Part shown: positions 8,443 to 64,000 of the stretch, one piece after another
Position numbering within the stretch: the stretch's first letter is position 1
Layout: every line of letters begins with the position of its first letter
Source of the DNA: Orbicella franksi
Lineage: Eukaryota
Assembly: GCA_964199315.1 (NCBI GenBank)
Contig: OZ116700.1
Span: 4,092,001-4,156,000 of the forward strand
Direction of reading: 5' to 3'
DNA length: 64,000 nt
Translations under genes and position numbers: made by a program
Notes under the pieces: generated by a model
What the model was told of the DNA's origin: nothing
Database searches by the model: none
The model's input: only the letters and a program-made list of their open reading frames with translations

Positions 8443-11400
8443 CTATTCCCCGTCTGTGTCCTTTGACGCATGTGCAGTGTCCTCATTGCTATTGGCTATT
8501 GGCGTGGATTGTTCAAGCTTGTTTACAGGCGCAGGAGTTAAAGTCTCGTCATTTTTATGGGTGTCTGTTTTCTCCGAGACGCCGTGAGCAAGCTCTTCAC
8601 CATTCTCTACTTTGTACTTGTTGAGCTCAGGATCACTGATTATCGTGTTGTCCTGTTTGTTCTCTCCAACGTCGTTTTCGTCATCAGTTGTTACCGCGTT
8701 ATTTTGAATTCCGACTTCACCATCTTTTCCGTCTTCGCCCTTTTGCGTGGTTTGCTCAGCGTTGTTTGGTTCCCGAGTCTCTTCCACACAGCCTCCAGAC
8801 AGTGGTGAACCCGTAAGATCGTTCGCGCCGACTTTCTCTTCACTTCCAATCGATTCCAAGTGTAAACCGTCGTTCACTTTCTCAGCACTGTCACTCACCG
8901 AAGGAGGTCTGTTAACAGCAGGTCTCCAGCACATTAAGGACAGATAAACGGGCATAATACACAGTCCGTGAAGGAGACCGAGCACGACAATGCCGAAGAA
9001 CATTCGGAAGAATATCCGGAAGATCTCCGAAGCGGCGAACGCCAGCACGATCATGCCGAGGAAGGTACTGAATCCTGCAGCCACAAACACAAACAACAGT
9101 TAAAACTCACATAAAAGACACAGTGCGCCTTTCACAAACTAACAAAAGCTACCTGAATGGAAATATAGGAAACGTCGTATGCATATGTTCAGGGCATAAT
9201 ACAACAGAATTAATGACAGTAAAAATAATAATAAGAATTTAAAAAATCACTTTATTTAAGTGTCACTGTATTTATTTAGTACAAGCTGTTCTAATTGGGG
9301 ACGCTATACATGAAGAAACAATTCAAATAAAGGATATGATTACAAGTTATCTCAGTGTGGTCATTGACAAATTTGTGAGCTCCCCATTCGTGAACTTATC
9401 CTAGAAATTAAGTTAACACCAAGAAGGGTTTACATTGATTAGTTTTACTCGGTCTGTTCTCATCTCTTTTGCGACTGTTTACAAGTTTTACAATAACTGA
9501 GAGAGTTCTCGCGTGCTCATCGGTCAAGAGCCATGGCCAATGAAAGCAAAGAAAATGGAACCATGGAAAAATCTGATCGATCTGTGAAACATTCGTTAAA
9601 CGTTAGTTCTGGAAATTTTGAGGTCTATCTTGAAAAGTGTACGTCGTATGTAGCGATTAATGTTTTGATCCCTTCACATGCACCTGTTCCCTGGTCAGTG
9701 AATTCAAACTATACTGAGAATGTATTTTACTGGTAACACTAGAGAAATTTGGAAAGTACGAACCCAAGGTTGAGTTTAAATTGAAAACATTTATCTAAGC
9801 TTTCTACAATGCTAAATAAAGCTTCTCTGATAGGATAAAAAAGCTGACGTACCTCCCATTAAGACACTCGCACCCACAGTGCTCAAAGCTTCCACTACTC
9901 GCTCACTGGCTGTTAACTTGGTTGACGCGACGTACGCATGCGCAATGTGCGCGCTGTAATCGACTGCGAATCCAATAGCCATTACGAGGTTGATCATGGA
10001 CACGGTGTTAAGGGACACATTCCAGATAACCATCAGCCCAAATAGCTCGCAAATTAAGGCTGCAAAGTTGAGCACCACCAGTAACGCCACAGTACAGTCC
10101 ACCAGAAAGGGGCTTGTGACAATAAACACCGCTAGGCCTGCGATTATCAGGTTCCTTATTGTCTCCGTTGATATTAAAACATACTGTTCAAAGAATATAA
10201 ACGGTCGAGTGATTGGAAAGGCATCGAGTTTGGACTTTTCTGCGATGTCATCTCGGAGTGTAAGCATGGCGTTTTTCTGGAAGGTGGAGCTGCCGTCACT
10301 CTTCATAAAACCGAGGACACGAGAAGCTTGCAGCTTTGTGCCGTCTTCGGAAAACTTCAAGTCTTGATTGAAATAGGAAAAGTTGGAGATGCGAAGAAAT
10401 GCCTTCAACTCGGACAAAAATCTAGGACCGGTTATGTCCTTCTTATACATCTTGGCATACTGAGAAAATGAGTTCATCCAAGACAGTGATAGTTCCTTTC
10501 TGAAATAAGTATTGCTTGTGACTATATTTGTCAGCTCTCTGATCTGTTCCTGGGTGGAGTCCAGCTCGTAATCAATATCGCTATTCTCCACGATGCTCAC
10601 CGGAATGGACACATCAAAATTGTCTTCTTGAGCAGTCAAGAATCGCTTCAAGTAGGTATCATCTTTTGCCAGGATTCGTCTATCAAACGCTTCTTCCACT
10701 TGGGTTACTCCGTATATTCCAGCACCAAGCAGCAATAGCGAGAAGCATATGACCACACATTTCGTTACAGGATGGGTCAAGAACTTACCCCACCGCTGCA
10801 TGGCCCGATTTGAGGTCTGTGGACGAGGTTCGTCCCAGGCTGGCGCGCCCTCCTTTGGTTGAGGTGCAAAGCAGAATGGTAAACAATCTCTGCGGCCCGA
10901 TTTGATTCTTTTCACTTCATATGACATAATGGCCACGAAGAATGTCACAATCATGAGAAATGAAAAAGTGACTGTCAGCGCAGCGTAGATACAGAAATAC
11001 CTGAAGAAAACAAAAAGTGGCGTTTTACTTCGGGTAGACATGTAGCAAAACTAAAAAAACACTGACTTGAAGTTGAATTCAATTAAACCTTGCCGACGTT
11101 TCCTATGTCATTTAAGTGGGTACAAATAATACAGCTGCCAATTTTGAATGATTTCTTTCAGTGAACTGCCAACCATTAGAAGTAAGAACACCAAAAGCCC
11201 AAGCAATCGTGGTTAGATTATTTAGGACCGTACAAATTAAAGGAATACACGAGGGAATGAAAATGAATGGAAATGTAGATTTTCAGGTGAACGAACTTCT
11301 AAAAGGTCCAACCCTGTTGCACGAAATTTTCAAGATGCGTTCAAGGGAATTGTTGCAACATGGAATTTCTCTAAAGAAAATTGCATCATCTAGTACAATT

Positions 11401-14400
11401 ACGCAACAACTCTTATATTGCCGCCAATATAATTAAAATTTAATCTCACAAAAGACGAAAGAGATATTTCATCTGTAAAGGCAGTGAATAAGCTATTGTA
11501 GGTTCCTCGTCCTGCATATTCCTGGCTTTGGAGTTGTAACTTTGAGTTGTCAGAACCGTTCTCTTAATGTAGGTATGGTGGCATAATTCACTCCAACTAT
11601 ACATTTCTGGTCTAAAAGTTGTATTGGCAATGAAGAACGAATCAGGGAGGCGCTTTATTATCCAAATTTCATCTATTTACCTGATCGCTGGAAACGAGGT
11701 GGAAGTGCTCACCGCGAACGCTACCAAGTCTGTCACTGTTGTCATGGTAACAGTTGCTCCCGAATGTTTCATAACAGCCTTAATTGTTTCGGTCTTTGAC
11801 AGTTCCCGTGGCTGTCGATCAAGCTCATCCACCATGATAAACATGTCATCGATACCGATTCCCAGAACCAAGAATGGCAAGACTCCCACGATACTGACGA
11901 ATGGTACCCGAAACCACATGGAGAGGCCAAGCCCAGCCAAAATCCCCAGGGCCACTGCAAACACTCCTGCATTAGCGAGCAAAGAGTGACCGGTCAGCGG
12001 ATTCAAGAACTTACCAAGTATGAAACAAGCGAAGGTGATCATGAGAGTGAAAGTGATTGAGACCCAGCTGACATCAGATCCGCTGCTCTCAGCGATGGCA
12101 TCGTCCAGGCTTCTCTCACTTGAGTAGTGGACTTCAAAACAACTGAGTTTGCCCACTAAAGAGGCCACTTTGTCGATGAAAGTCTTCTCCCAATCAATAA
12201 TCTTTTCGTTCGTTTCGTCGTCACTAGGGTCACGGATGAAGTACACCATTTGCAGTGCTTTCGCCTCGGTTATGCTTCCACCTTCTCGGTTGGCATCACC
12301 AAACATGCGGTTGAAGTTGTACCAGAATGGACGTCCATTTCGCATCAGCGCCGTGTTGTTGTACGCTTTGTCTAGCTCGTGTTGAACCTGCTGGAGGTCT
12401 TTACCGTCTAACTTACTCTCATTGAACTGCGCAAATTCCAGCGCGTTAATCATCATACATTCGTCTGGTGACTTGGATTTGTTTCCTGCCAGCGTGACAC
12501 AGAAGTCGGAATAAGATTCCAATCCAATAACCGCGTTGTGCGCTTCAAAGGCCTGCTTGAGACACTCAGGGGCAAGAACATTGGGATGATCAGAAGACGC
12601 CACCAAAAGGACGATTTCCTCTCGAATCTTAACTCTGAAGTATTTCTCAGCGGTGTCTAAATCTTCAATGGACTTGCTGCTTTGAGGGATGAAAAGTTTT
12701 ACAGTTCTGGTTTCTGATTGGAACCAAACAAATCCAACGGAGCACACACTGACGAACACAAGACATACTTGGATTGTTATGAGAGGATGTTTGGCGATTC
12801 CTTCACCATAACAAGCGAAGAATCGCTCCAAAAGACGCAAATACCAGCTGCAGAAAGACGACCACACAAGACATGGATTGAATCGGCGTGGGCAGCAACA
12901 GCTGAAATCACAAACATTCTAGATAAGAAAGGTATTCTTGACATTAAAATGAAACACACCAAACTCCAAACTTGTACATGGATTAACTCTGAGAAAGAGA
13001 GGGATTTGAAGACAACAGAATCCTCCAGAGTGTACTCCAATAGGGCGTTAAATACCTGTCCGTTAATAGAAAGGCACTGGTTAGGTGAGACCCATGGTGT
13101 TCAGAAATAAAGGATCAAGCATTTTGCAATCAATTTTGTCTTCCCTTCTCTCGCAGATTTCGGAAAACAGTTTGCCAAGTTTCATGCAGGAGTTTTTCAT
13201 AAATTGTATTAAATGAGTTTATGCTGATTACGTAACGGTGAATTTTGTTTGCAATACTGTACTTATAGAAACGTTGCCAGTTCCTAACTACTTTTAGTAG
13301 TGTTCCTTTACACCAACAGTTTGGGTAATATTGAACAGCGTAGCCCCCCTCTCTTCTTTTTGCTATTGCCGTTTCTCAAGCTACACCCAACTAACTGAAC
13401 GCCTGGAGGAGGCTATGACTGGCAGAGCTTTGGGTATTGTTGACTGGCAGAGCTTCCAGCTGTTCACCTGAAAAATTGTTTGCAATCTTCGATTCATGTA
13501 AGGCATAAAACCCTTAGGGTATTTTTTCTTTTGGGTTACATTAGTTGGTAGTTAAACCATTCCAAGAATTTTCATCATTGAGGCTTTTTTTTAGCTCAGC
13601 TTATCAACAATTTCTGTGCTTACGTTCTTTTGTAATCGAATTCTCAAATGTAAACTTCAACAACAATCACGTGGCAATTATGCTTTTCACGGTTTATCGG
13701 TTCATTAAGTTCGAAACACTCAGAAATACAGCTTGTGACAGATCCGGAGGCGATCTGCCGTGTCTCATTAGTTTATAGCAATTGCCAGTCTTTCCAAGAC
13801 TTAACCGGAAAGGTTCGGAAAGTGTAATATGTAAGCAAATGATTCAAAAATTCACGTTGTTCTGTCAAAGGTGAAAACGATACTGGGGATATTTTAGTAC
13901 AGTAAAAGACGGAAATCCTGAGTATGATCTATACAATGGGCGACCACAAGTTGATTTTGCTTTCACTAGACAAATTTGAAATCAAATATGAGCCCTTGAA
14001 ATATTTACGTAACGGATCCTGTTGAATAGGCATAATTCGCCCCATAAAATGATGAAAATTTGGGTGAAATTCTTATTAAAAAGCAAAGTGAACGTTGCAC
14101 TCATCAAGAGCATCACTGGAACGACAAACACTGCATAACTTTGGTTTATCTTAGGCTTGAATAAAGATTACGCTGGTTAGACCAATTCCCATAGAAAACT
14201 GGATGGGTTGCAGGTGTTACCCAACATTCACTTCAATTTGTGATTCTTGTTTTCATCATTCTTCATTTCGTCTTGTTAAAGCATTTGTAACTAACCGAAC
14301 AGATAAAGGACTCTAGGTTACTTGTTCTCATGGAAATTTTTAGCTCGATAAATGCATGCATGGATGAAACGACCAGAAGCGATTTACATCGCACGCTTCC

Positions 14401-15241: not shown

Positions 15242-17833
15242 TGACAAAGCGTCGACAAAACTGTTTTATGGCCCAATGAATAAAACAGCTGAACGGTTTT
15301 CACTCGAAAAAACAGTCAGGAAGAACCATTAGAAATCTTGGCTTAAGAGCTTGTTTTACCGGTTTGTCACCGAAGAAGCGAATAAAGTCACCATCTATCG
15401 CTTTGGTCGAACAGACCGTGACAGCGAACTGAATAAGAAATCGCTTTACTTCGAATGTTGTCATTAAAAACGGAAACAAAAACACTTGTTCCAAGAGTGT
15501 GTTGTGATTGGACGAGATGGCACGCTAATGACATTCATGAATCCAGCCCAGCTTGACGTAAGCCCGTATTATTGAAATTGTGATGCACGAGTAGTCTGTT
15601 CACGTTGTAAGGCGTTCTCACGGCAGCCATTTTGAGTTTATTAGTCCTAAAGGATTAGAATTTCAATATGTTGAAGAACCAAATACAGCAGCTATGACAT
15701 CATGTGAAAACTGAAATTCTAGTATGGCTCTGAGGCTGGGACGAACAAAAAAGTTCTTTTGTTTTAGCCCTAAGCCTCAGCGCCAGGTCAGATATCAACT
15801 GCAGCACTTTCCAAATCCATGGCTTTGAATTAAACTAGTTGCTTTGATCGGCCAATAAAAGACCTAAAACTAACAAAGTTCTCTCTGATTGTCAGGGACA
15901 CCCAAAGCTTTTAATCCCCTTCCGATTTTCTTGGGGGGATTGTCACCTCGAGCTTTCGTGACGTGAGACATTTAAAAGAGCTTTTCCGCGTAAAGAACGT
16001 TACAAATGCAAATATACATTTCACGACTTTAGGCGTGTAAATGAGATCGCTGCTGCGTCTCTTTTAAGAAAGAGTCGCGCGCTCAGAAGTAAACTGGCGT
16101 GATTTTGCTGTACATTTCATTCAGCTCGGTGCGTTTGCAAATGCCTTATGAAACCAGACTAGATAACTTTTAAAAGCAAATTGTTGCTTCTCAGATAAAA
16201 AGAATCTTTACAAAATCGTTGTTATAGACTAACGATTCGATCCAACGTTCTTTATTTACATGATAGCTTTAACTTTGTCGAGGCTGTTTCTTCTTCGCTA
16301 CACGTCTTGGAATAAAGAAATATGGCGTTCAGGTAAAAATGTGCACAATTCTTGGTCAGCTCTTTGAAGATTTTGACGTGAAGTAACAGGCCCTTATAAT
16401 CGAACGGGCGGGGAATTTACATGTCTAATGTCATAATGTATGCTTTTGCAGCTATAAGGGTTGTTGTGCGGAAAAACTCTAATGCCTGTTGTAACGGTCG
16501 TTTTGTGTCTCCAAAATTCGGAATGGCAATAGGATCTAAAGTTTAAGGGAAATGGAAAAAAAGCGCTAATTAATTCGAGAGGACTCAAGTTTCCCTAGAA
16601 ATGAATGACCGAACAGATAAACATGTTTTAGCGGAACCTAAAATTAATCTCCAGAGCTTAAATCCGTCATTGGGTGCTCCTGTGTTTGTGCATAAAGTGA
16701 ACTGGCTTGAGACGCGTGCAGTGGTTCTTGTAAAACTCGCCGGTGCTGTGCCGGTACATATTATCTGATTTTGTTTCGGCGTGTGGAGCTCCTCCACTGA
16801 ATGATATGTTTCTGGGATGGTATTTTGGTACGTGCAGTTATTTCATCTACCGGCTTTCAGTGGCTTTTTTCAAGCAACCTTTACAGTCGGTAGACATAGC
16901 TCCGATAATGCAGCTCTCATTACAGCTTGTTTAGAAGATACGTTGATTTTTACATGTTTTACTTGCAAATGATTAAACAACACTGCAGTACGTCAAGTTT
17001 CACAAAAATGCTTTTATTAAAAAAATCTACTCTATAAATTAAAGTCTCACAAAAATTTTATAGCCGCTCTAAAAAATGGCAAGGTTTTTTCATCGATAAA
17101 GAAAATTTACAAAGAAGGCACACGGACGGATCAATCTCTTAAACTAATTGTTAACTTCGTGACTGTATAGTTTAGGAATGGATTAGCCGAACACGAGACA
17201 AACTAGTACAACTGATGTTAACAATTGTAAAATACTGATCTGTGATATCAGATACCGGTCCATCTTCCCCTTAAGGCTCAGTCGGACAAGGCATTCTTAA
17301 GTCAAGTTAGTCATGATATCAGATAGCTACTTGAAAAGCTACAATTGTGCCTACATTTTTGGTTTCTTTATTCCTGAGTAGAAGAGCTTTGTTTATAGAA
17401 ATCTAACCTTACTTAGTTACCATCGGTTTCTTGTTAATGCTTTAGTGCTTAAAAAAATCAAATTATTCAGCTCACCATGAACTTTTCTTAAAGCAGGCAA
17501 TTACAATGTCAAACAATAAAAAGTATTTATCGTCACACGAGTTATTTATAATAAAAAAGATAAATACAAAAAGCTATAATATGTTTCTTCTTCTTACATT
17601 AATGAAATGGCCAACGGTCACTTGCAGAAAGAGTTGGAAAAATTCAGCTCATTTAGTTCTCTCTAAATCTTTTTTCTAAGACAATAAAGATTTTAAGCAA
17701 TAAAAAACGATTCTTATCACACGAATTATTCTTGACAAAAAAATTAAATATAAAAGGCCAAGCTACTTCCCAACTTCTTGCAATACTGAAATGGTCAACG
17801 GTCACGTACGGAAAGAGTGGGAAAAATGACTTA

Positions 17834-18079
17834 GGTTGTGTTCACACTTGGTGCCTTGACACCGTCCCAAAATAGTGTTGCATCCAGACCCTGGGTACTC
17901 TAAAGACCCAAGTACTATCTAGTGCCCGAGCACAAGGTCGAAACTTTGTACCCGGGTACATGCATTGTGCACGAATTGTGGTATAAACATGCACTTAAAA
18001 AAAAAAGGTGTGTTCACATCAGCGTTCAGCGAGAATTGTACTCGGGCACCCTTCTTAGACACCAAGTGTGAACATAGCC
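17834..18079. mobile_element. PIF/Harbinger-type (Tourist-like) MITE downstream of the PKS stop codon
   Basis: TIRs GGTTGTGTTCACACTTGGTG and CACCAAGTGTGAACATAGCC, flanked by TTA on both sides (17831-33 and 18080-82). Confidence 0.8.
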
Positions 18080-18451
18080 TTACTTTTTGATTTAACAACG
18101 AGAACATGCAAGTTGCTACTACGTCCTTCACTTGTGTTGTAAATAAATTGGATACTCGTTAAAACATTCTTCTTGCTGATCTCAGCTGTAGAATTGCTAA
18201 ATATTTGAGAAGCAAGGGGACAATAGCTCCATTTTTAATTGACCAACAAGGACCGCCAAAATTGCGGCTAATCAAGGAAAAAAAGAACAAAAATTGCGGC
18301 ACTAATAGCTAATTTTTGAAGAAAATTCTGATGTTAAATAAAAATTTGTAAAGAGAGGCAATTTTTGTTTGACAGCAAGGACCTGCAAGCTGCAAATAGC
18401 CACTTTTGTTGAAAATTACCTTATGGAATGTGTGTTTATGCTACTATAGTT

Positions 18452-21400
18452 CTAACTGGTTAACAAAGTCACTGCAAATACAGCTTCTATCATGTTGTAA
18501 AATGCTTTTAGATCGGAATAATCAGTGAATTCCAAGTTGTAAACTCGTCGGCCTGTTATGACGGACGCAACTTGTCCCAGGTTCCCACTTTGATGAGCTC
18601 CAACTCTTCGCTTGCGCCAGGCATGCTTCTGGGCACTGGAGACCAGTCGCCCTGGCTGCACCATGCGGAGGCCTGAAAGAAAAGATTCTTGTGAGAAATG
18701 CTTTCTAAAATGAGTAACTTATTAATATAAAAGAAATCTAAGGGTAATCTGTTTGAGAACAGCACACGCATAGAAAAGGCGGTTTTGCACATTGTTATGT
18801 GAACACGATTTGGTGGTATGTTTAGATTTTGTGAGGTCTATTTTACTAACGAATAACAACATCTGGAAGTTATTGTCTGGAAAGCCTAGAGAATTGAAAG
18901 TTTCGATTCCCAGCGATTATTCGTGTTTGCATCAAGCTATGTGAACATGCGCTGGTTTCTATTTCTTCAAATAAAGTTCGAGCGAAGCGAAAGGTACTGA
19001 GAGAAACGAATCCTGAAAAATTCGAAATTCTGCAGTCAACAAAATTTCGTCAAATTTTATAATAAAGCATTACTACGAGTACATAACAGCTTTAGTCGTT
19101 TTGTTACCTTCCAGGTCAATTATCTTTTTGGTTTTCTCGCTTTCGTCCGTTGCTCCTTCCTCGATTCTTGACCTCAACTCAAGTTTGTGAGCATCCTCGG
19201 TGAAGAAAAGTTCTCCAAAGTGTGGATATTTGTTGCCTAAAATGGAAAAAGGTCGAAGATTATGAGAAATAACCGTAGACCAATAAATTATCAAAGACGG
19301 GTCGGGTCTTCTCGGGTCTTCTGGAATAATCGTACGTAAAGACTATTCTCTCGATTCAAGAATTCCTTTTTGAAAAACGGCATTGAAATATAAAGAGGGC
19401 ATTTCTTTAAACAAAGGCGCTCCTAGCTTGGGTTGTCGTGCAAAGAGCATCGCCTGACGATCCAAATTATGCCTGTGAAGTATACTAAATGTTGCAAAAA
19501 AAAAAATGATGGACACATTGAAAGAAATACAAGTCACAGTTGTAAACGTGACCTCCGCGTTTCCAAATTTGTCGATCATGCAATCCACCCCTACTTGTAG
19601 TGCTCGTCACTTCTTAATGGGTTCTGGTCATTTGCCGAGCACCGCGCTACAAAATCCATCGCTACTGTTGGATTTCCTTTGCTCTAGGTATATAGAAATT
19701 CACTGCGTCTGTAAGCTACCCTAAAATGATACAAAGGACTTTTGACAGTGGAATAAAAATCATCAGCTGAACTTTTAACATTATCGAAACGCAATCACAA
19801 CAAATTACCTTTCTTTGAGTGAAGGAACACTTTTACTCCGCTGCAAAACTTTTCCACGGCTCGTCTTTGATGGAATGTTCTTGTAGGTCTGGAGAATTCG
19901 GGGAACAACATCCGGTAGTTGAATGCGAGGGCTGTTGCTAGGATACCACCTGTCACTCGCGCATTGGGTAACTCGCTCAAAGAGAAATGATCACCAGGAC
20001 AAACGAGCTTGGTTGTGCCTCCATCTACCAGCTGGCCCCATAATTCCTCAACGCGATATACTGCAGAAACTCCACCCGAGAAGCGGTCGCATTGGGCTTT
20101 GACATAGGTGAGATGTCCACGATAGCGGACCTAATGATAGAAAAAAGAGGTTGCGGAACTTTGGCATAATTCTCTGATGGTCAGTGGCCACGTTTAATGA
20201 TTTGGCATTCTCTTCATCCAAGAAATACTGGCAAATACTGTTGCAAGTTTTGCCTCAAAGCATTGATTGAATTATCGCATTATTTAATTCTTACATGACT
20301 CCGTTATATTGGGTGGAACAGTAATTGAAAATCAATAACACATGTCCCATACCTCAGCAGGCTGCCATTCTTTGAATGTTCTAAAAGAAACTTTGTGGTT
20401 TGTTAGAAGAGCGTTCTTGAGTGCCCTCAAGTTGTAGTTAGCGAGACCCTTCTCAAAGCTCCTTCTCTGCAGTTCATCTATGACCCAGTCTTGAGTGTGC
20501 TTCTTCCTCAAGGTTTCGAATTCTTCAGCTTCCATCTTTAGAGAATCTACAGCCAGTTTTGCCAGAAAGTTTTCAAAAGCAAGCTGTAACGGAGAAAAAC
20601 GAATCAATTAATTTTTATTTGTTAATCGATTATTGGCATGCATGAAGACGCTTTTATTAACCTTTACCGCTAGGAAATAGCTTACTGGATGGCGTAGCGA
20701 ATATACGAAACACACATGTGAACTGCGGTTGAAACATCAAACGAAATTGTTTGGGCGATACCGGTGCGTCGCTCTACCGAAAGGAGATAAAAAGCGTTGA
20801 TACTGTAACCAAAGTAGCAAGCATTGCTTGCACTCGTGATCTGCGAGGAACATTCCATTCATTTGAGTACCAGTGAAAACTGAGCTACACTGCAGTTGCT
20901 CCACCAAGAAAAAATGCGTGGTCAACGGAACTTGAAACAGTCATTCAAACAAAAACTGAAATTAAACCTCATAAAGATCTAGGCATATATAAAACAAATA
21001 CTTCATTCCGTAGCCTTCAGCTGGTACCCGTTAACTTTCTTACCATTCATTTATATATAACTATTTTTCTCTTTCTTATTTAAACGCTTTATTGCCAACA
21101 ACCAAAGAGGAAGTATTCGATTTTGTTACTCAGCGCTAGCTAGATTTGTTCTTTAATAAGTTAGTTTTTATAACAAGATGGTATTGAATTAGCCAGGTAA
21201 TCACTATCTTATCGTTGCAATGACCACTTTTCCCACGAACCTGAACCTGTCCAAGTTGAAACTGTTCATCGGCAACCATGGAAACAAGTCTATTGCTGAC
21301 AGTCCGCGAGCGCGGATACCAAGGAAATGTGTCAATCATAGCCACAAACTCCACCCTCTGGTTCTGCTCTCTCAACAAGGACGCCATTTCGTAGGCAACA

Positions 21401-24400
21401 AGCCCTCCGTAGGAATATCCGCCAAGAAAGTACGGTCCATGGCGCTGCTCCGCGCTGATCAGTTGTACGTAATGTGCGGCAAGCTCACGCACTCCACTCC
21501 AGTCCTTACTCACTTCTGTTGGGTCAGTATAGCCCAGGGCATAGAAGGATATTAAATCCTAAGAATGGTAAAGAAAAGATATCAATACAACACTGAACAG
21601 TGGTGCTGCGTTAATAATGGCTTAATCTGCACAAAGCAAACACACGCATACACACACACGCACCAACAAATACTGGGAGATGGGAAGAAGAATTTATGGA
21701 TAGCAATCAGCTGAACGATACTTCTGTCGGATCCACCGAAATCACTCTTTGGCCAATTTCTATGAAAATGTGGCCCATGATGCTCTAAACCATTTTTGTT
21801 CGCTAATTTCAGGTAGCTAGAACGTGTACCACATGTAATCCACTGTTTAAGGAAGCAATGAGTGCCGTGTTGGTCTTGCAAGTTACGGTGGTATAAAATT
21901 GACCTTCACTGCCAGTCAACTTACAACACTTAGAATTTGTTATCAGAGTTAATAACCTGTTAAAAATGTGAGAATTGATAAAATATGCGTGTGTATCGTG
22001 TAAATTATTCGAGCATTTAGGTGAACTTTTTATTGGTAGCCCTAGTATTTAGTGGAATAATGGAACAGTAAGCTAGAACTTCTCTTGTGCAGTAGCAAAG
22101 TACAATATACCAAAGCCTAGTACGTAGGGGGGATTGTTGCTTTCGGTATATGCGAGGCAAGGAGAATTTGACTGATGAATATGAGACTTGACCGTCTATA
22201 TACACTAGTTGGGAATCACCTGGCCTTGAAATCCCGTAGAAATCGCTGCCAGATTTAACGCATAATGGTGTGACGGATGTACACAGAAGAACTTGATGGC
22301 TGCGCCCGTAGGAGTGTACAGCGGTACAACTTGAATCTGACTCTCTGACGTGACATTAGATAGGGCTGCGTCGGTCAGTCCGGGCTGTATTTGTGCAGGT
22401 GCATTTTCTAGGGTGACGTTATTTTGAAGTTGTTCACCAGGTACTCCTCCGCTAAGCCTGGCCGTGACGTCATTTGCAATTTTAAGCGCAGTTGTATCAG
22501 GCTGCATAAAGTAGAAAACCTGAAAGAAGAGCAGCGTTTGTATCTCGTCAATTTGTACAAAAATATTACTACGATAATGCCGAAGATGACTTGCAAGCGG
22601 TTACAGTCAGCGGGCAGCGATTATTTTTGCAACCCACCTCAAAAGAAACTTGCAAATTGGCTTCAAACTGCATTTTCAAGGTCAGTGCCCCAGCTGAGTC
22701 GAGACCATAGTTGTACAAGCTCTTGTTGAGATCTACCTCAGACCCCGAAGAGAATCCTGCCCATTCAACCAATACCAGGAGTACGTATTCCTTGACGAGT
22801 TCGCGTCTTGTTTCTTCATCTTTCTCCAGCGTAATGTTTTGCGCCAGGGATTCTGACGTGTACGTCTGGTTTTCAGAATCATTAATTTCATCTCTGATCA
22901 GCGTCATTCTGGGCGTCTTCTTTAACCCGACAAGACTTCTCATGTAGCGAGGCCAGTCCACACCAAACAGGGTAATTTGGAAGCGGCTCGGTTGCTCACT
23001 TAGAACTTTGGCCATGTGTTTGACTCCTGTGTAAACATTTTAAAAAGGATTTAGAAGGTACAACTGTAACTTAAAGTATATGGTTTGAAGACAGAAGAAC
23101 TGGAAGTTCATGAAATGGGGTCGAGTGAAAGGGAGACGTACGCTTCGAAAACCTGAGCGGGATAGCCATCTTGAAAGTAGGAAAAAGAATGATGGTGACT
23201 TACTGTGAGTACGACTGCCTCTCTTACCATCGTTCATGTCATGACAATGCCCGACTTAAATCATAGCCTTTTGCATGAATACGCTAATCTGAGAGTCTCT
23301 GTGGGGCAAAAACGTGTGGTACTATAGGTAACAACGAGGCTTTGCTACAAAACTGTTCTTCTCTAACCACAGAGCATCAAAACGCAAATGATCTTGCATA
23401 TTCTTAAAAATAATTCATGGCACGTTTGTCGTCCTTTACGTCCTTTCGCAACAGGTCTCTGTTATAAGACGGCCCTTCTAACTACAAGCTCGACTATTAA
23501 CTCTTGTACACGAAATTTTAATCCGAAAACAATTAAACATATTACTTCCATTAGCCATGTCAATACCCACATTTTTAGTATCACCTTACTGGACGTTTAA
23601 CCCTTTTTACCGTTTGAGAATATTGAGATATCGGGAAAATGTTTATTAGGTCTTAGCAAAGAAATAGCATACCATCTTTGGCTTGTATAAAGCCAAGTCC
23701 GCCCAAATTCATCAATTTAGCAACATTAGACTCTCGTTCCATCAAACCAGCTCCACTGATTGGTCCCCAGTTTATCGCCAATCCGGGTAGACCGAGCACA
23801 TGTCTTCGGTACTGGGCAAGAGAATCTTGAAAAGCATTGCAAGCTGAGTAAGAGCATTGCTTCAGGTTACCGAAGACCGAGGCCATGGAAGAAAACATGA
23901 CGAAGAAATCCAAATCCATTTCCAAGCTCATTTGGTGAAGTAAGACGGAACCTTGCAAACAAATTGAAAACTGTTACCATAATGATTCTAGTTAGTCTCC
24001 GTTGCATAACTTTACTTTTAGGAGCTTAAGGAAAGGTGGTCACTAAGAATGTGGCGCTTTTTGAAAAACATATGTCGAGGCTCTAAAAGGACTCGTTGGG
24101 GACATCCACTAGGCATACCTCAATGAATTGTTTTTCTATATTTTTAAAAGCCACGCACAATAATTTGAAAAATGACTTGTTGTGCGGTGAGCCTAACCAA
24201 CCATTAACGGACCTAATTAGTCCTTATTGGTATGGAAAGGTGGACGCTGATGGAGGAATTCATACAGAGGCTTTAACTACCAACTGCTAGGCATCACCCT
24301 CGTCAGCCGTTGACCAGGAACTATGGTAGTTTCGGCGAGAACAAAGTACCTCATTATGGAATCTTACCTTTTATCTTAGGGCCCATGGACTCGGCGAAGG

Positions 24401-27400
24401 CCTCAAACGTGAAATCTTTGACATACTCATCTCTAAGAATCATGGCAGTGATCACGATGCCAGCCACACTTGGAAGAGATTGAAGCTGCTCTTTAAAGGT
24501 CGCCATTTGCTCTTGTTTGGAAATGTCAATCTGTTAGGGTCAAAAATATAAAACGCTGTTTGGAATTTTATCACCTTGCTTAAAGGTTCCACATTTACTG
24601 TGATTCAACAAAGCAACTTGCCCTTTATCTAACACTGAACCTTGTTAACCTCATTCTGTGTGTGGCGAACGTCTATCTAATAAAGCTTTTTTGGTATGAT
24701 AATGGCACACTGGTTACCTGGAACATATGTATCTTCGCGCCTGTCCTTCCCTCTAGCTTTCGCACTTCTTGACATTTGGCATCTGAGGGCTTTGAACGGC
24801 CAAGAAGTCCAATAGACTTTGCTCCATTCTCCGCCATCCAGCGAGCCACTTCAAATCCATATCCTCGAATACCTCCTGCCACTAAGTACGTTCTGTTTTC
24901 TTTCAGGCCACATTCATCTAAACCAGTTGGAAGTACAGGAATCTTGTCGAGATCACTTCTTTTTCCAGATAATGGAAACGCGAGAATTTGAAAAGAAATG
25001 CTCGAGGAGGCGTTTGTTTGATGTTGTGGTAATGACGTTTTGTCGAAGGAAGTGGCTACGGCTTCAATTGCTGTTGACAAGTCTTCAGAAACCAGCTGCA
25101 TTGCTAGAAGCTTTTCCAGGACTTCTTTGCCTTTCAGCAAATCAAGACTCGCTAAACTGAGCTTTTCGTAAACCTGCGGAGACCTGAGTATGTCTGCCAT
25201 ATCCTCTCTCTCATATCTGACATTTGTAGTTGCTGTAAATACGAGATCGCCAGTAAACTCGGAACTCAAGATTACAACTTTTCCTCCTCGTTTGAGCGAA
25301 CGACAACTTTCTTGAAGTGCATTTGGAGCAGGTGGGTAAAAAAACAAAACGGCGTCGAAGCTCTGAAAAGAATCATCATTGAGGCAAAAGGAACCTTGAT
25401 GGACCACACTTTCCGCACCCAACTCAAGAAGAAGGGCTTTTGTAGACGTTTGGCAAGTGTCAGGAATGGTGCAAAATACTCTGTGTCCGAGTGTTTTTGC
25501 AAGGGCAACTGCTGCTGGCCCAGGGCCACGGTTGGCTTCGTGTATCAGTAGTGACTGATTTTCTCCTGCTGATGCTACTCTTTGAAGAGCATAGGAAGCT
25601 ATGGCTAGGCACGCTGGGATGTAAGCCGCTTGTTCCTTTGTCAGGCTGCTTGGTTTTACAAACATGTTATTGGCTTGAATGGCAAGGGAAGGGGAAACCC
25701 GTCCAGAGGCGACCACAGCACACACTTCGTCTCCAATTTGTAAACGAGTCTTCTCGTTTTCACCATGTACGTCTGTCACCTTTCCAACAACGAAGACGCA
25801 TCCTTTTGGTTTGGCTAAATCAATCAGTGATTCTGAGGGTGTCCAGCAATATAGAAGATCTATTGAGAGCTCAGTGTGGGATGGCTTCGACAGGCTCTTC
25901 TCACGCAGGCAGAGAGTTGTTGACGAAGGGATACATGATAAGTACAATGAGCCCTTCTTCTTGCTTTCCATTTTCTGGTTTGTCGGTTGCTCTGGGGAAA
26001 GTTTTGTCCTGACCATACGACTAACAAAACGTTTGCCATTTCGAAAGGCAACCTCTTCTTCAAGGCTCTCACTCAGAATCTCCTCAGCCAATAAATCTGC
26101 TTCATGCATATCCTCTTTATTACTGAGGTCAACAGATATCATCATGATCTCAAGCTCTTCGAGGCGTGCTGTTCGTCGAAATCCCCAGACTGAAGAACTC
26201 CACGGGATAGTACAGGCAGACTTCGGACAGGCGTTTAACAGCTGTGTACGTTCGGTGACAAAGAAAAGTCGAGGACTCAGCAACTCCTTCTCTATCAGCA
26301 GTTTGAGCAAGAAGGCAGAACTGTCGAGGGCGAGGCGTTGACCTTGATCGATCACATCGAATGTGTCCGGCAGGATGTTCGTTTCCACAGGCCACGTGTT
26401 CACGAGCCTAAGATTGGATAATTGGTCAGGTGGTATGCCCGAAAAGGCTGCTCTGATTGCTTCCTCTGCCTCGATGTTGAAACATCTAGCATTTGGCAGA
26501 TCAACTGTGACAAAATTGACTTTGGCTGCCTGAAGTCGCGCGATTAAGGCATCTGAAAAGACGGAGGAATCTTTCAGCACAATGCAAGTAGGATTTCGGG
26601 TGGTTTCCTTCTGCCTTTGTAAAACATCCTCCATCCACTCCTCTTCAAAGGTTAGGTCATCAAAGGTAAATCGACGTTCTGTGCTAGTCAGCTCTGCAGT
26701 ACGAAAGTCATTTATTGTGAGTAACACTTTACCGGATGGACTCATGACGGTAATGTCAAATTTTCCAACTAGGGTCATATCCGCGGTCACGTGGCAGTAC
26801 AGCTGTTGGGTAGACGGCACGTCCCTTAACGTAATGCTCTTGAAACCCACTGGCACAAAGGAGGTATCTTCAGTTACAAAGTCCCCAATGGGAATAAAAC
26901 AGGATTGAAGGCAGGCGTCTAAAATGCAGGGATGGACAACATAACTTTCAGCTTCTGCTTGAATAGCCGGTAGTCCACTGATGTCAATCAAGCAGAGTCC
27001 CTCGTTATCGCGCTGCCATATTTCTTTAATGAGGGAGAACGTGGGTCCATAGTTAAACCCAAGCTTTTCGGATATTTCTCTGAAGCGCTCTGTTGTCATT
27101 TTCGTCATATTTGTCATCCGCTCCTCTAAAGCTGGACCAATTTGGTCAAAGGCTACGTACATTAAAAATGAAGAAAAGATTTAATATATGACTAAACTAT
27201 TTAGAAATATCTTGAACGCTTTGAGCAGAATTTCAATGTATGATGATTATCCTGTCAAGTGGTGTAAATAGTTATATGGGTTTTAACAGGTTTTCATTTT
27301 CCAACAGTATAATTAACGAGAAAATTAAATTTGATGTTATCGTGTTGTAGTCTTTTTAAAATGGTTTGTGGCCAACAACAAGTAAAAGATAAGAACAACA

Positions 27401-30400
27401 ACAACAACAACAACAACAGCAACAACAACAACAACAACAACAACAGCAACAGCAATAGCAATAATCAGAATTTTAAGACTGGTTTATCAACGTATTCGAA
27501 AACGTTTCAGCTATAGTAATACCTTTAGCTTCAAAATTCTCGCGTCTACGCAGCAGATCCAATGAAATGTTCCCACTGCTCAGAGCAATCTCTGACTGGT
27601 CATCCTGTAAGCTTGTAATGTAGAACTGAGCCTTGTCAATTTTGTCCTTCTTTTGGAAGCGTAATCGTAAGTAACGAACCTGAAAGTTCATAGAGAAAAT
27701 TTAGGCAATTATTGTACATCATATGTAGTATTTAAATCTTGCGAGAAAAAATTTGAAATTCGACACACTCTTTCAAGTTTACGCACATAATGTTACCTAC
27801 CTGTGTTTCGGGAAGGGTAAGAAGATTCAAGAGCTTCACATCAGTAAGTTCCAAGCAAGCAACATCTACGAATTTGTCCTTCACCATAGCAAAGGCCATT
27901 TCCACGTAGCCAGTTCCAGGCATCACAGCGCCTCCCTGAATAAAAGCATGATCCTTTAGAAGAGGGAAACGATGGAGGTCAATCTCAGTTTCCCAGCAGT
28001 GAAGGCCTGAATACGGCTCGGTCATCTTCACTTGTGCTAGAAAGGGATGGGCAAGCTTCTTTGTGGTTTCCTCAGCACCAATTGGAGGAATTATGGTTTG
28101 AAGCGGATTGTCCCTGAACCAAAAATTCCTTTCAAGCCATGGGTAGTGAACTGAACGGACAAACCTGGCTGATGGATTCTTCTGTACTAAAGACCAATCT
28201 ATGGGCAATCCCATTGTATACAGTCTACAAACTGTGTTCTGAAGAAAGCATCGGTGTTGGTCTTTAACAGGTACTCTCTTGCGAGGAAGAGTTGCGATGA
28301 CAACTGGAGTTTCTTGCTTACTAAGATCCTCTTGACTAGCAATCTGTTTCACATAGTGGGCTAAAATGGGCTGCGTGCTGATCTCAATAATCTGCTTGTA
28401 ACCATCGTGTATCAGGTGCTTCATCGCGGGATAAAACTGGACTGGACAGCGAATATTGCGCCACCAATAATCGCCGTTAAACTTCTGACCTGGGAGAACG
28501 TCACCCTCAACGGTAGAGTAAACAGGAATTTTCGACAATTGGGGGTTTAGCTTGATGCGTTTCATAGTTGCTTGAAAAGGCTTTCTGATGGGTTCCATAT
28601 GCGTGCTGTGAAATGCACGTTTTGTTCCAAGAACGCGCCAGAAGGTGTCTTTAGCGTGCATTTTTAGGTGTTGACCCAAAGCTTCGATTGACTGGGCTTC
28701 CCCAGAAACTGTGACACTTTTTGCATCATTAACTGCAGCAATGTCAAGTGTACTACTTAACTTCAGGTCCATCAGTAATGCTGTGGCGTCTTCCGCAGAC
28801 ATGCCTAGAGCCGCCATACCACCATTATTAGGGGATTTTTCTTGCAGAGTTGAGCGAGCCAGCACCAGCTGAACAGCTTCTTTGACTGTTATGATCCCAG
28901 CAACACAGGCAGCTGCAAATTCTCCTAAACTGTGACCAATGACGGCGGATGGATGGATTTTCCAGGACATAAGCAGACTTGCTGTTGCGTACTGGATAGC
29001 AAAAGTGGCTGGTTGTGCAATGTAATTCTCTGAAATTCTTGAAATGTCCTCTGGCGCCATCAGCTCGTCCATGAGCGACCACTTCATACCTTGCTCATTG
29101 AGTAAATTGCTCACCGTCAAAACAGCTTCTCTGAAGACAGCTTCACATTCAATTAACTGTCTTCCCATCGCATACCACTGAGAGCCCTGACCACCAAACA
29201 TGAAAACGAGCTTTCCATCATTGGATTTCACTTCTGCGTAGGAAACCAACTTATCCCATCCCATGGAGTCATCAGCGTAGTCTGCTAGAGAATTGGATGC
29301 TTCGGCTGTGGAACCAAAAGCAAGGGCCAACCGATGTGGGAATTGACTGCGCCGTTCATTCAAAGAATAGCATAGGTTTTCCACAAAACGCTCATCCATG
29401 TCTTCTACATTATTCTTGATCCATTCTGAGTAACGTCTTGCCATCTTCTGTAGAGCTTCTTTTGAGCGTGCTGACAAGGTGAGGACGTTATTTAGGCGAT
29501 TAACGCTCATTTCATATGAGCATTGCTTTGAGGGAACTTCACGAAGGATAAGATGCACGTTTGATCCTCCAAAACCAAACGAGTTTAATGCTGCAATCCG
29601 GGGTTTTCCCTTTTCTGTTACCCATGGTTCAGTTGTTCGTTGCACAACAAATTCGTTTTCTTCCAGCTTAAGCTTGGGATTCAGCGCATTTATATCAACA
29701 GTTGGCACATATTTCTTCTCTTTGATCATCAGAGCGACCTTGATTAGCCCAGCAAGACCGGAGGTAGATTCTGTATGATTGAGGTTTGACTTAACAGAAC
29801 CAATCCTTAACTTACGTTTGGACGTTGCCGTTCGCCTGCTGTAGGTATCAGCTATCGAGTCAATCTCTACCACATCTCCAATTGCGGTACCAGTGCCATG
29901 CGCCTCGAAAAAATCCACATCTTGTGGATCCACTCCTGACTGCTCTAGCACCCTTCTGGATAGTTCAGCTTGCATCTTTGAACTCGGAGCGGTCATTGGC
30001 ACAGCATTTTGCCCATCGCTATTCATTCCACAGGCAACGATCTCGCAGTATTCGTCATCTTTGTCGTTCAAAGCTGCATGTGACATCTTCAAAATAACTG
30101 CTGCAAAACCTTCTCCTCGTCCATAGCCATCTCCGGAAGCATCAAAACTTTTACTACGTCCGTCAGGTGCAAGGAGTCCACCTAAACTGGATGCTATCTG
30201 AACCATCTCACTAAGGATAATGTTAGGTGCGCAAACGATGGCTATTTCGCACTCGTCATTGTGCAGGTTGTCATAGGCGATTTTGAGTGCAGTTAAGGAT
30301 GAAGAGCATGCCGTGTCAACGACCAAGCTTGGACCTGTCAGATTTAGACAGAAGGACACCCTGTTGGCGATAATAGACAATGTGCTTCCTGTCGCGGCAA

Positions 30401-55607: not shown

Positions 55608-58600
55608 CTAACTAGTCAACAATGTCACTCCAAATACAGCTTCTATCATGTTAAAGAACGCTTTTAGATCGGAATAATCAGTGAATTCCAAGTTGTAAAC
55701 TCGTCGACCTGTTATGACGGACGCAACTTGTCCCAGGTTCCCACTTTGATGAGCTCCGACTCTTCGCTTGCGCCAGGCATACTTCTGGGCACTGGAGACG
55801 AGTCGCCCTGGCTGCACCATGCGGAGGCCTGAAAGAAAGGTTTTTAGTGACAAATTTACTTTAAGGTGTAACTTATCAATATAAAAATAGTTTTAAGGAT
55901 GCACTGTTCGAGTACAGCACATACACAAAGAAGACGTAATTACCAGGTGTTTTGTACAAGACAATGCACAATGTGGTGGAATCATTAATTTTGTTCGAAT
56001 TTTGCTTTGAAAGGGATAATAAAAAACCGGGTCCCTTCTTGTATACATGGCCTGATCAATTCGAAATTTCCAAAACGTTCGTTCGGATTTTCTTAGCTCT
56101 TGGTAATATGCGCCGTTTTTTACTCTTGAAATACAGTTCATAGGACAAAAGCTAAGGGGAAAAAACATTCTAAATTATTCGAAATTTTGCGAATTCTGCA
56201 GGCAACAAAATCACATCAAATTCAACAAACCATGCAAACCTAGGCGAAGATAATAACTTAATTAACTCATGAGTTTTGTTACCTTTCAGGTCAATTATTT
56301 TTTTGGTTTTCTCGTTCTCGTCCGTTCCTCCTTCCTCGATTCTTGACCTCAACTCAAGTTTGTGAGCATCCTCGGTGAAAAATATTTCTCCAAAGTGTGG
56401 CCATTTGTTTCCTAAAAAGGAAGATGGTTAGAAAACGTTAGAAATAACCCAAGACCAAAGATGCAAACTGTCGGGTCAACTGAAAGTCATAGGAAATATT
56501 TCCTCAATAGACCATTTTACAGTTGTCTGCTAGGTGACCTGGCCTTTAAATAACAGCGAGGCTGGAGGTGACCTTGCTTTGATACAGACCTCTACTTTTG
56601 TCAGGTAAATCCACCTAGTTAGCATTAAAACAACTTGATTTACACAACAAAAGCAGTGAGGTCTGTGTCAAAACAAAGTCACCTCCAGCTTCGCTGCCAT
56701 TCAAAGGCCAGGTCATTGAGCAGACAACTGTAAAATGGTCTATTCAAGGAATCAGTTAAAAACTGACAGCATTTAAAGAGAGAAAGCATTTACGTCATCT
56801 CCAGTCTTCTTCGCAGTTTGGGTCGTAATCCAAAGAGCATTGCATGGCGGCTCAAATTATGGTGGGAAAGTACGCTATACGTTTCAACAAACTGGTGAAA
56901 ACATTTAAAAGAATACGATTTACAGGCGTGGACAAGCGTGGACTTAAGCGTTTTAAATGTGTCCATATTGCAATCCATCTTTTTAGCGCTCGTCACACTC
57001 TAGAGGTTTTTGTTATTTGCCGAGCGCTGTCCTACAAGATCATTCTGCTACTGCTCTACTTCCTTCGCCAGAGAATAAACATTCAGCGCGTCTTTAAACC
57101 ATTCTCTAATAACGACGTAACGATACTCGGAAGTGAAATAAAAGCTATCAGCCGACTTTTCATCATTGAAACGCTGTCAGAGCAAATTACCTTTCTTTGA
57201 GTGGAGAAATACTTTTACTCCGCTGCAAAGTTTTTCCACGGCTCGTCTTTGACGGAATGTTCTTGAGGGTCTGGGGAATTCCGGGAACAACAAGCGGTAG
57301 TTGAATGCAAGGGCTGTCGCTAGGATACTACCTGTTACGTGAGCATTGGGTAACTCACTCAATGAGTAATGGTCACCAGGACAAACGAGCACCGTTGTAC
57401 CTCCATCGACCAACTGGCCCCATACTTCCTCGACACTGTCCGATGAGCGAAGCGTGGGCGAGAAGCGGGCGTTTTGGCTTTTGAGAAAGGTGAGGGGACC
57501 GCGATAACGAACCTAATAATAGAAAAAGAGTCAAGAAAAGAGCTATTATGTCAAAGTTTAATAATTTTACTCTACTCGTGTTGCAGTCAACGCATCGAGT
57601 ACCGTTTTCCCCAAAATTGCAATAGGTTCCAAAGGACCTTCGTTATACAAGAGTCCGTTATATGGATTGGTTTTGTAATTTCCATTTAATTAAAGCGCCT
57701 ATACCTGAGGGGGCTGCCATTCTTGATGTGTCCTATTGGCAATACGTTGGTTCCTCAGAAGAGCCTCTCTGAGGGCCCTCAAATTGTACGTGGCGATGCC
57801 TTTCTCCAAGCTCCTCTTCTGTAGTTCCTCTATGATCCAGTCTTGAGTGTGCGCCTCTTTCAACTGTTTATATTCGTCTGCATCCATCTTCAAGGAATCT
57901 ACTGCAAGCTTTTTCAGAAAGTTTTCAAACTGAAGCTGAAAACACGAAGAAATGAATAACTTTATGTGAATCCCTCCGTCACAATAAAAGTAACATAGTA
58001 CTACTGTCGATGATGGGGCTGACCCGCCCTTTAGCTGTGGTGTTTCAAATTATGGACAAACTCATCAGCGCGTTACATGTCTGGAGATTTTGTTAATGGT
58101 AAAGGGGCCCATCCGCACTCGGTGAATTTCGTCTGTTTTGCAGTTTAGAGGTGCAGACAGTGATTGTACCTGCACCATGTTTTGTTAACCTTTAACAATC
58201 TTCCAAAGCGGCGTCGTGTTACCTCAGAGCAAGACAAGTTCTTGTCAAAGGTCAACACCGAATTTTAAAGAGAAAAACAGTTAAGATGTTTCTCCGCCAA
58301 CAGAGAGTCAAATTTTGTGGTTAGAAAATTAGTCGTTAATTTTTAAGGCCCCGTCCACACTATACGTCGGAGAAATTCGAAAGCGCAGCCTTATTTCAAC
58401 GGTTAGGCCTACCGTCCACACTAAACCGTCACAAAAACGGCTTTGAGTTTTGGTGTTGCCGGAGAACATTTTGAAAATGGAGCTTTGTTGCCTTTTCAGA
58501 GTGAAAAAGGCCGTTTTCAAATTTCTTCGGCGCAGTGTGAACGGGGCTTAAGTGTAGACGCGTTGATCAAAGTGAAAATTTGATGGGGACAATTGTGGTC

Positions 58601-63812: not shown

Positions 63813-64000
63813 CTGCGAGAAAACAAAAAAGAAACAATTGAACGTTTACCTTCCATATTATGGATTGTTGACCAAGCTTGGTAGATAATCAATATTAGTA
63901 CAATTTCCAGAGGTGAATATAAGAATTGGACATTCTGATTCGTCGAAAAACTCGGCTTATGACGCTTTATAGTGAATATAACATTTCCGAGCTTGGTTAC

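Follow-up and report, generated by a model that had tools for sequence, protein, structure and literature searches.

What does a coral polyketide synthase carry beyond its thioesterase, and what could such an addition do? The question is raised by a stretch of 64,000 nucleotides of Orbicella franksi (contig OZ116700.1, positions 4,092,001 to 4,156,000; the window), which has eukaryotic gene structure and holds two tandem copies, A and B, of a very large gene on the minus strand. Type I fatty acid synthases (FAS) and polyketide synthases (PKS) count as soluble machines whose last domain is the thioesterase (TE) or another release domain. A sequence-only reading of the window claimed that both PKS paralogs continue past the TE into a domain resembling pleckstrin homology (PH) domains. 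The continuation is real. The peptide quoted in that reading is present on the minus strand of copy A, and copy B encodes a tail 92% identical to it in the same three exons. The tail very probably has the PH fold, as judged from predicted models, and it belongs to an expressed transcript. What it does at the end of the synthase is answered with less confidence, and the lipid reading is weaker than the fold reading.

The exons of copy A encode, in order, a sterol-sensing/Patched module, ketosynthase (KS), acyltransferase (AT), dehydratase (DH), an enoylreductase-like (ER-like) region, ketoreductase (KR), acyl carrier protein (ACP) and TE. The order is based on Pfam matches to single exons, which in the window comprise SSD, KS, AT, DH, KR, PP-binding and Thioesterase. 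An in-frame N-terminal Patched/sterol-sensing module followed by KS-AT-DH-...-KR-ACP-TE is the architecture of the cnidarian Patched-fused type I PKSs. After the catalytic His of the TE (GDH motif), the frame of copy A runs on along the minus strand through three exons, e1 to e3 (Table 1), for 175 residues. Of these, ~28 complete the TE, ~10 form a linker and ~131 make up a separate domain, so that the earlier figure of ~130 residues after the His corresponds to the extra domain alone. This domain begins within the last TE exon with no intron at the boundary and is thus encoded by three exons, not by the last two as first proposed. Both tail introns are in phase 1, and each splits a Gly codon.

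Splicing of the tail is observed directly in copy A, for which RNA-library contigs from two runs of different studies, X1 and X3, were compared with window positions 17800-23100. In contigs of these runs the joints 18672/19108 and 19236/19809 fall exactly on the predicted GT..AG sites of the minus strand. Contig depth is 10^3 to 6x10^4 in exons and 9-96 in introns, an excess of 100-1000 fold; depth says little about expression, and near-identical paralogs may have contributed contigs at 95% likeness, while the splicing itself is clear. The intron at 19237-19808 has a depth of 15-96 against 2,000-60,000 in the flanking exons, and that at 18673-19107 has a depth of 9-35. Coverage by contigs extends beyond the stop codon, at least as far as 17800, and a loose contig end at 20132 matches the exon upstream of e1. 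In the independent gene models of Desmophyllum pertusum (P0120), Oculina patagonica (P0140-P0142) and Stylophora pistillata (P0143), the TE is spliced to the same tail. The last exons are included in transcripts, as the sequence-only reading requires. Both X1 and X3 are poly(A) metatranscriptome runs with very high word depth (10^3 to 6x10^4) over the exons of the compared interval. X23 and X24, two poly(A) runs of raw reads that carry the same species label, place no read on the gene and are not counted as a test of splicing. The difference between the two pairs of runs may reflect strongly condition- or tissue-dependent expression, or a label that differs from the organism.

The fold was predicted for the Oculina orthologue (P0141, residues 3428-3574), which is identical to the window tail in 148 of 173 residues (86%), and not for the spliced product of the window itself. 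The input to AlphaFold2 was an alignment of 27 rows, A2, composed of orthologues and exon fragments. MAFFT misaligned exon-2 and divergent exon-1 fragments; exon-2 rows were dropped from A2 and from a further alignment, A3, which leaves five close sequences as the basis of the model's N-terminal half. The model has a predicted local distance difference test score (pLDDT) of 83.2 and a predicted template modelling score (pTM) of 0.81. It starts with a helix (residues 10-21), continues with seven strands (23-28, 37-44, 49-54, 69-72, 76-81, 109-114 and 118-123) and ends with a helix (126-140). A disordered acidic loop spans residues 56-66 between β3 and β4, and a short helix (86-91) lies inside the long β5-β6 insert. 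This predicted arrangement, a seven-stranded antiparallel β-sandwich closed at one end by a C-terminal α-helix, is that of the PH superfamily. ESMFold2, used as an independent predictor, folds the same segment with a pLDDT of 80-82.

Structural searches with the model point to the same superfamily. The top of the Foldseek list against the PDB consists entirely of PH domains (ISP3/ISP1, PLC-gamma1/2, Sbf1, ASAP1 and PLC-delta1) with E values of 3e-5 to 1e-3. In an exhaustive VIA search of 48,161 representatives the best match is PLC-gamma1 with Z 12.7 (121 residues, 2.9 Å), next is PLC-delta1 (1mai) with Z 12.4 (116 of 119 residues), and ISP1 (Z 11.4) and PLC-epsilon and PLC-beta2 (both Z 10.7) are also found; all 50 listed rows are PH-like. 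The matching clusters of the AlphaFold database contain PH-domain proteins of many eukaryotes and no synthase. ESM features place the tail near PH-clan clusters at 0.89, which serves as a lead only. The model also carries the marks of the PH domains of phospholipase C (PLC), namely the extra N-terminal helix (10-21) and the helical β5-β6 insert (86-91), with a PLC domain as best structural match. The alignments with 9qb7 (Z 12.7) and 1mai run from model residue 8/9 to 141/142. Of the two types suggested earlier, PLC-type and Num1-type, the first agrees with these matches and the second does not appear among the top fold-search hits. Sequence homology to PLC PH domains is not detected: identity is 12-16% in the structural alignments, and a profile search of PDB sequences finds no PH chain. 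The PLC likeness seen in the model is thus a resemblance of shape only. Pfam gives no match on single tail exons even at E 10, these fragments being too short. On spliced orthologues the PH profile (PF00169) is the best match in two of five proteins and is covered almost over its whole length, with 14.4-15.4 bits and E 0.03-0.06. The gathering score of 25.1 is not reached, and for this reason annotation pipelines (Pfam/InterPro) show nothing after the TE.

The tail is an old and constant part of the Patched-PKS family, to judge from its distribution. Exon 3 occurs six times in the genome. There are five Patched-KS junctions, each 12-14 kb upstream of a tail copy, and all five Patched-PKS genes end in the tail. 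One of the five, on another contig (C12 paralog; G000:C12:22572000-22594241, loci L007, L009 and L006), is a third, deeply diverged Patched-PKS-PH gene with ~40% identity over the large KS-AT exon and 31% over the PH tail. Other assemblies contribute two more deep clades, L010 and L011 (in L011, ACP and TE lie upstream), which are 29-46% identical to the rest. The C12 paralog, L010 and L011 all keep the domain, the three-exon layout and both phase-1 introns. A phmmer search with exon 3 against 1.84 billion representatives finds relatives with E values down to 1e-34; these are only 19 exon-sized open reading frames, all of them PKS tail exons, with no full-length or non-PKS protein. Hence no donor of the domain is detectable by sequence. 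A search of the coral's own genome at E 10 likewise returns nothing but PKS tails.

Between copies A and B (18455-19902 and 55611-57284) the tail has dN 0.040 and dS 0.226 over 97 synonymous sites, giving omega 0.18, and tail introns are only ~63% alike. These values indicate purifying selection on the tail between the paralogs. Taken with the relatives of exon 3 and the gene models of three other stony corals, this places the reality of the tail far beyond chance. For the DH-ER-KR exon of the same pair (24676-27162 and 61351-63837), dS is 0.63 and omega 0.33. Copies A and B thus differ far less at synonymous sites in the tail exons (dS 0.23) than in the DH-ER-KR exon, which suggests either exon-limited gene conversion or constraint on the synonymous sites of these short exons. 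The sixth tail copy (L005, G000:C3:4222556-4222765) lies ~66 kb beyond the window end. It consists of exons e2 and e3 only, with 82-87% identity; the conserved P of ..VQPG.. is replaced by L, and the 20 kb upstream yielded no TE, ACP, KR or KS exon. This copy is either an orphan left over from a partial duplication or a pair of exons captured by another gene. In the synthase core, the KS-AT part (27735-33395, minus strand; P0141 residues 900-1900) has its best non-cnidarian matches in bacterial modular type I PKSs (Sorangium and actinomycetes, 30-37% identity) and not in animal FAS. This affinity fits a separate 'cnidarian PKS' clade. A homologue search with the KS-AT region of P0141 is dominated by multimodular bacterial PKSs and adds no cnidarian full-length proteins.

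The PH domain may well pack on the TE to form a rigid TE-PH unit. With the TE as chain 1 and the PH domain as partner, complex prediction gives an ipSAE of 0.71 against 0.00 for the best control; ipSAE is the predictor's own confidence, and in nature the two domains are covalently joined. The ipSAE mark is reached by 51 of 78 solved complexes and by 2 of 108 mismatched pairs. Among eukaryotes, 71 of 105 solved pairs reach it, or 39 of 65 if one counts only those for which older structures contain no similar complex, as do 2 of 126 unrelated pairs. Three runs share 90-95% of their contacts, with a partner pLDDT of 80-82 and ~60 confident contacts. On the PH side, the predicted contact involves the β4-β5 turn, β5, the insert helix, the β6-β7 hairpin and the hydrophobic C-terminal end. 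On the TE side, it involves the final helix and the final strand, which directly precedes the GDH loop. In P0141 numbering, residues 3391-3396 and 3410-3425 of the TE face residues 3501-3517 and 3567-3572 of the PH domain in this prediction. A loop of the TE that lies partly within this predicted contact differs between the copies. In copy A (e1, ~20040-20110, minus strand) it reads ..RFSGGVSAVYRVEEL.., while copy B and all orthologues read ..RFSP.LRSSDSVEEV..; the two forms have the same length and differ at most positions. This could be a compensated double frameshift or a fast-evolving loop.

The side of the domain that this packing leaves free would be strongly basic. Full tails of four deep clades were assembled and aligned, eight tails in all, and motifs were read on predicted secondary structure and alignment, not by superposition. 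The net charge calculated for these tails is +6 to +18, and the isoelectric point (pI) of the PH domain is 9.6-9.8. Nine K/R columns are invariant across the four clades: three in the N-terminal helix, two in the β1-β2 loop, and one each at the end of β3, after β5, in the insert helix and in the C-terminal helix. The pair at the end of β1 and in the β1-β2 loop (S-K/R-K-G) is invariant, and the β1-β2 and β3-end positions are the usual headgroup contact sites of PH domains. Only one of the nine invariant columns falls within the predicted TE interface, and the other eight lie outside it.

The reading that we favour, with a confidence that falls just short of even, is that of a TE-packed PH domain whose basic face lays the release end of the synthase against the membrane. 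The N-terminal 12-helix Patched module would hold the enzyme in the membrane with the synthase on the cytosolic side, a placement taken from the usual topology of the Patched transporter family. The PH domain would pack on the TE and leave free a side that is strongly basic in every clade, with the invariant K/R residues of the N-terminal helix, the β1-β2 loop and the β3 end. This face would lay the release end against the anionic cytosolic leaflet beside the Patched module. We expect the contact to be of low affinity and electrostatic, and not to involve a canonical phosphoinositide pocket. Since the Patched module already anchors the protein, such a weak contact would be enough to bring the TE to the bilayer, and the hydrophobic product would leave the TE next to it. 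Taken by itself, the membrane-facing role is a tentative assignment. The sequence-only reading would have the enzyme tethered to the membrane at both ends; the complex prediction points instead to packing on the TE, which is compatible with a membrane-facing role and is no proof of it.

Several observations weigh against this reading. The K-Xn-(K/R)-X-R signature of phosphoinositide binding is incomplete, as the expected position of the β2 Arg is an invariant Gly (F/Y-G-x-L). The C-terminal helix (..DLKAFYNMIEAV..) has no Trp in any clade, and F, Y or L occupies the matching aromatic position; a near-invariant Trp in this helix is a mark of classical PH domains. The β3-β4 loop, which is acidic in the coral clade, is disordered and varies in length. 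WRKRR, which follows the short helix of the β5-β6 insert and had been taken as a basic feature of the module, is found only in the close coral clade and is absent from the C12 paralog, L010 and L011. Most PH domains, moreover, show no specific lipid binding. The docking itself rests on one predictor: AlphaFold2 of the 450-residue TE-PH didomain, for which the TE alignment is too shallow, gives pLDDT 54.7 and pTM 0.42 and is uninformative on packing, with the PH part keeping its topology. Finally, conservation at the interface is no higher than elsewhere in the domain (mean BLOSUM 1.38 against 2.03, permutation p 0.92).

The same basic face could serve protein partners. In the alternative that survives best, which we nevertheless regard as rather unlikely, the TE-bound PH domain is a docking platform without membrane contact: its basic face would guide the chain tethered to the synthase's own acidic ACP into the TE, or recruit a downstream enzyme or other protein. 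The charges are complementary, the ACP having pI 4.5 (net -5) and the PH domain pI 9.6 (net +6), and the prediction puts the PH domain next to the strand that runs into the loop of the catalytic His. The invariant basic positions outside the TE interface would be available for such a partner. Among the nearest structures are the PH domains of PLC-beta, PLC-gamma and ELMO1, which act mainly through protein contacts. However, animal FAS and other PKS thioesterases manage without a platform of this kind, and basic patches suit membranes equally.

A canonical PH domain that binds a specific phosphoinositide, with WRKRR as an added lipid-binding insert and the C-terminus tethered to a phosphoinositide-marked membrane, is improbable. 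This is close to the function first proposed for the tail. The positive net charge speaks for it; the β2 position held by Gly and the acidic β3-β4 loop speak against it. The nearest solved folds include the IP3-binding PH domain of PLC-delta1 (Z 12.4), and the loop pair and the basic residue at the β3 end are kept in all clades. Against this, the disordered β3-β4 loop varies in length, the three deep clades lack WRKRR, and the tail has only 12-16% identity and no profile match to PLC PH domains. A specific phosphoinositide pocket is less likely than a membrane-electrostatic or a protein-docking role. Still more speculative, and with little probability in our view, is a lipid-gated release device, in which the PH domain would sense a particular lipid of the membrane, or the state of the Patched module in the same enzyme, and, by packing against the strand that carries the catalytic-His loop, would turn on chain release at that membrane only. 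If true, a single polypeptide would join the synthesis of a polyketide lipid to its release and to its membrane hand-over or export, an organisation that to our knowledge has no precedent in any PKS or FAS.

It is doubtful to a similar or greater degree that the PH domain is a purely structural cap that only stabilises or shields the TE, for instance by covering a hydrophobic surface that faces the dimer partner in other synthases. The ~60 confident predicted contacts, which include the hydrophobic C-terminal end, and the start of the domain inside the TE exon at a boundary without intron would suit a cap; one would not require conservation of nine basic surface positions, eight of them outside the interface, and the interface is not the best-conserved part. 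An annotation artefact, in which the last exons are untranslated or part of another transcript, can practically be dismissed: read-through of the e1 donor would stop after three codons, leaving an unspliced form that ends at the TE, and low-depth intron contigs are present, but the spliced joints are 100-1000 times deeper than the introns, omega between the copies is 0.18, intron phase is kept across clades and independent gene models splice identically.

Table 1. Coordinates of the tail exons, introns and flanking features of the two gene copies in the window
Feature	Position	Strand	Content and signals	Evidence
Copy A exon e1	19809..20130	-	Last TE strand, loop with the GDH catalytic His, last TE helix, ~10-residue linker, PH N-terminal helix and β1 (PH part ~19809-19880); reads to ...GVKVFLHSKK; donor G/GTAAT; ends with 1 base of the split Gly codon	Open frame, splice sites, RNA joint 19236/19809
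Copy A intron e1-e2	19237..19808	-	572 nt, GT..AG, phase 1	X1 and X3 RNA contigs skip exactly 572 nt
Copy A exon e2	19108..19236	-	PH β2, β3, acidic disordered β3-β4 loop, β4; acceptor TTTTAG, donor G/GTAAC	RNA joints on both sides, secondary structure of the orthologue model
Copy A intron e2-e3	18673..19107	-	435 nt, GT..AG, phase 1	X1 RNA contigs skip 435 nt at depth 6781
Copy A exon e3, coding	18455..18672	-	PH β5, β5-β6 insert (short helix and WRKRR), β6, β7, C-terminal helix, hydrophobic end (..AVTLLTS); acceptor TTTCAG	
Copy A stop codon	18452..18454	-	TAG	
Copy A 3' untranslated region, at least this long	17800..18451	-		RNA contig depth 10^3-10^4 down to the end of the stretch compared
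Copy B exon e1	57191..57512	-	TE end and PH start	tblastn and translation
Copy B exon e2	56283..56411	-	Split codon GGA	
Copy B exon e3	55608..55828	-	Coding 55611-55828, stop TAG 55608-55610	

Two other features of the window lie outside the two synthase genes. Just downstream of copy A, at 8443-12867 on the minus strand, is a separate unfused Patched/NPC1-like gene, whose exons match the Patched SSD, the sterol-sensing domain and the NPC1 middle luminal domain. Positions 96-229 are a run of 134 N, an assembly gap or a masked stretch.

Among known systems, the gene family itself is described in a 2026 preprint on Palythoa (doi 10.64898/2026.04.08.717340), in which most cnidarian PKS proteins comprise Patched with KS, AT, DH, KR and TE; the window genes belong to this family and show these domains. 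A text search of this preprint does not find the word 'pleckstrin', and its domain list contains no PH domain. Literature searches for a PKS with a PH domain return nothing relevant, and those for Patched with PKS return only this preprint as a description of the family. Animal FAS and the AFPK-type animal PKSs share with the window genes the type I order KS-AT-DH-(ER)-KR-ACP-TE and a C-terminal α/β-hydrolase TE with GxSxG and the GDH His. They are known to end at the TE or to have none (compare PMC10764717), whereas the window PKS begins with a 12-helix membrane module and continues into a PH domain. An animal PKS family with these two ends suggests a synthase that makes and releases a hydrophobic product at the membrane. 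The strong representation in coral RNA libraries, together with the tandem arrays, makes it likely that this product matters for coral lipid biology. PKS engineers would find in the TE-PH pair a release domain that nature has already equipped with a module for targeting or docking.

PH domains of lipid-transfer proteins (CERT 4hhv, Osh3 4iap, ORP11 2d9x) are a functional parallel, as they place a lipid-handling protein at a membrane. They are weaker matches than the PLC type (Z 8.9-9.1), and they are N-terminal and flexibly linked, whereas the tail is predicted to pack on a catalytic domain. Toxoplasma ISP1 and ISP3 (4chm, 4chj) are the top Foldseek matches (E 3e-5) and the nearest ESM feature cluster, and like the tail they have a PH fold that the classical Pfam PH model does not pick up. 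Unlike the tail, they are free-standing small proteins of the inner membrane complex, in an unrelated organism and context and with no sequence similarity. The PH domain of PLC-delta1 (1mai) and the N-terminal PH domain of PLC-gamma1 (9qb7, 7z3j) have the same fold as the predicted tail element by element, with Z 12.4-12.7 over 116-121 residues. Both they and the tail have basic residues in the β1-β2 loop, and both belong to a lipid-handling enzyme. The tail differs from them in that it follows a thioesterase at the C-terminus, where theirs is N-terminal on a phospholipase; it also lacks the β2 Arg and the helix Trp, has a long acidic β3-β4 loop, and shows 12-14% identity with no sequence or profile match. 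The PH-fold tail is thus a known fold at a new place on a known type of enzyme.

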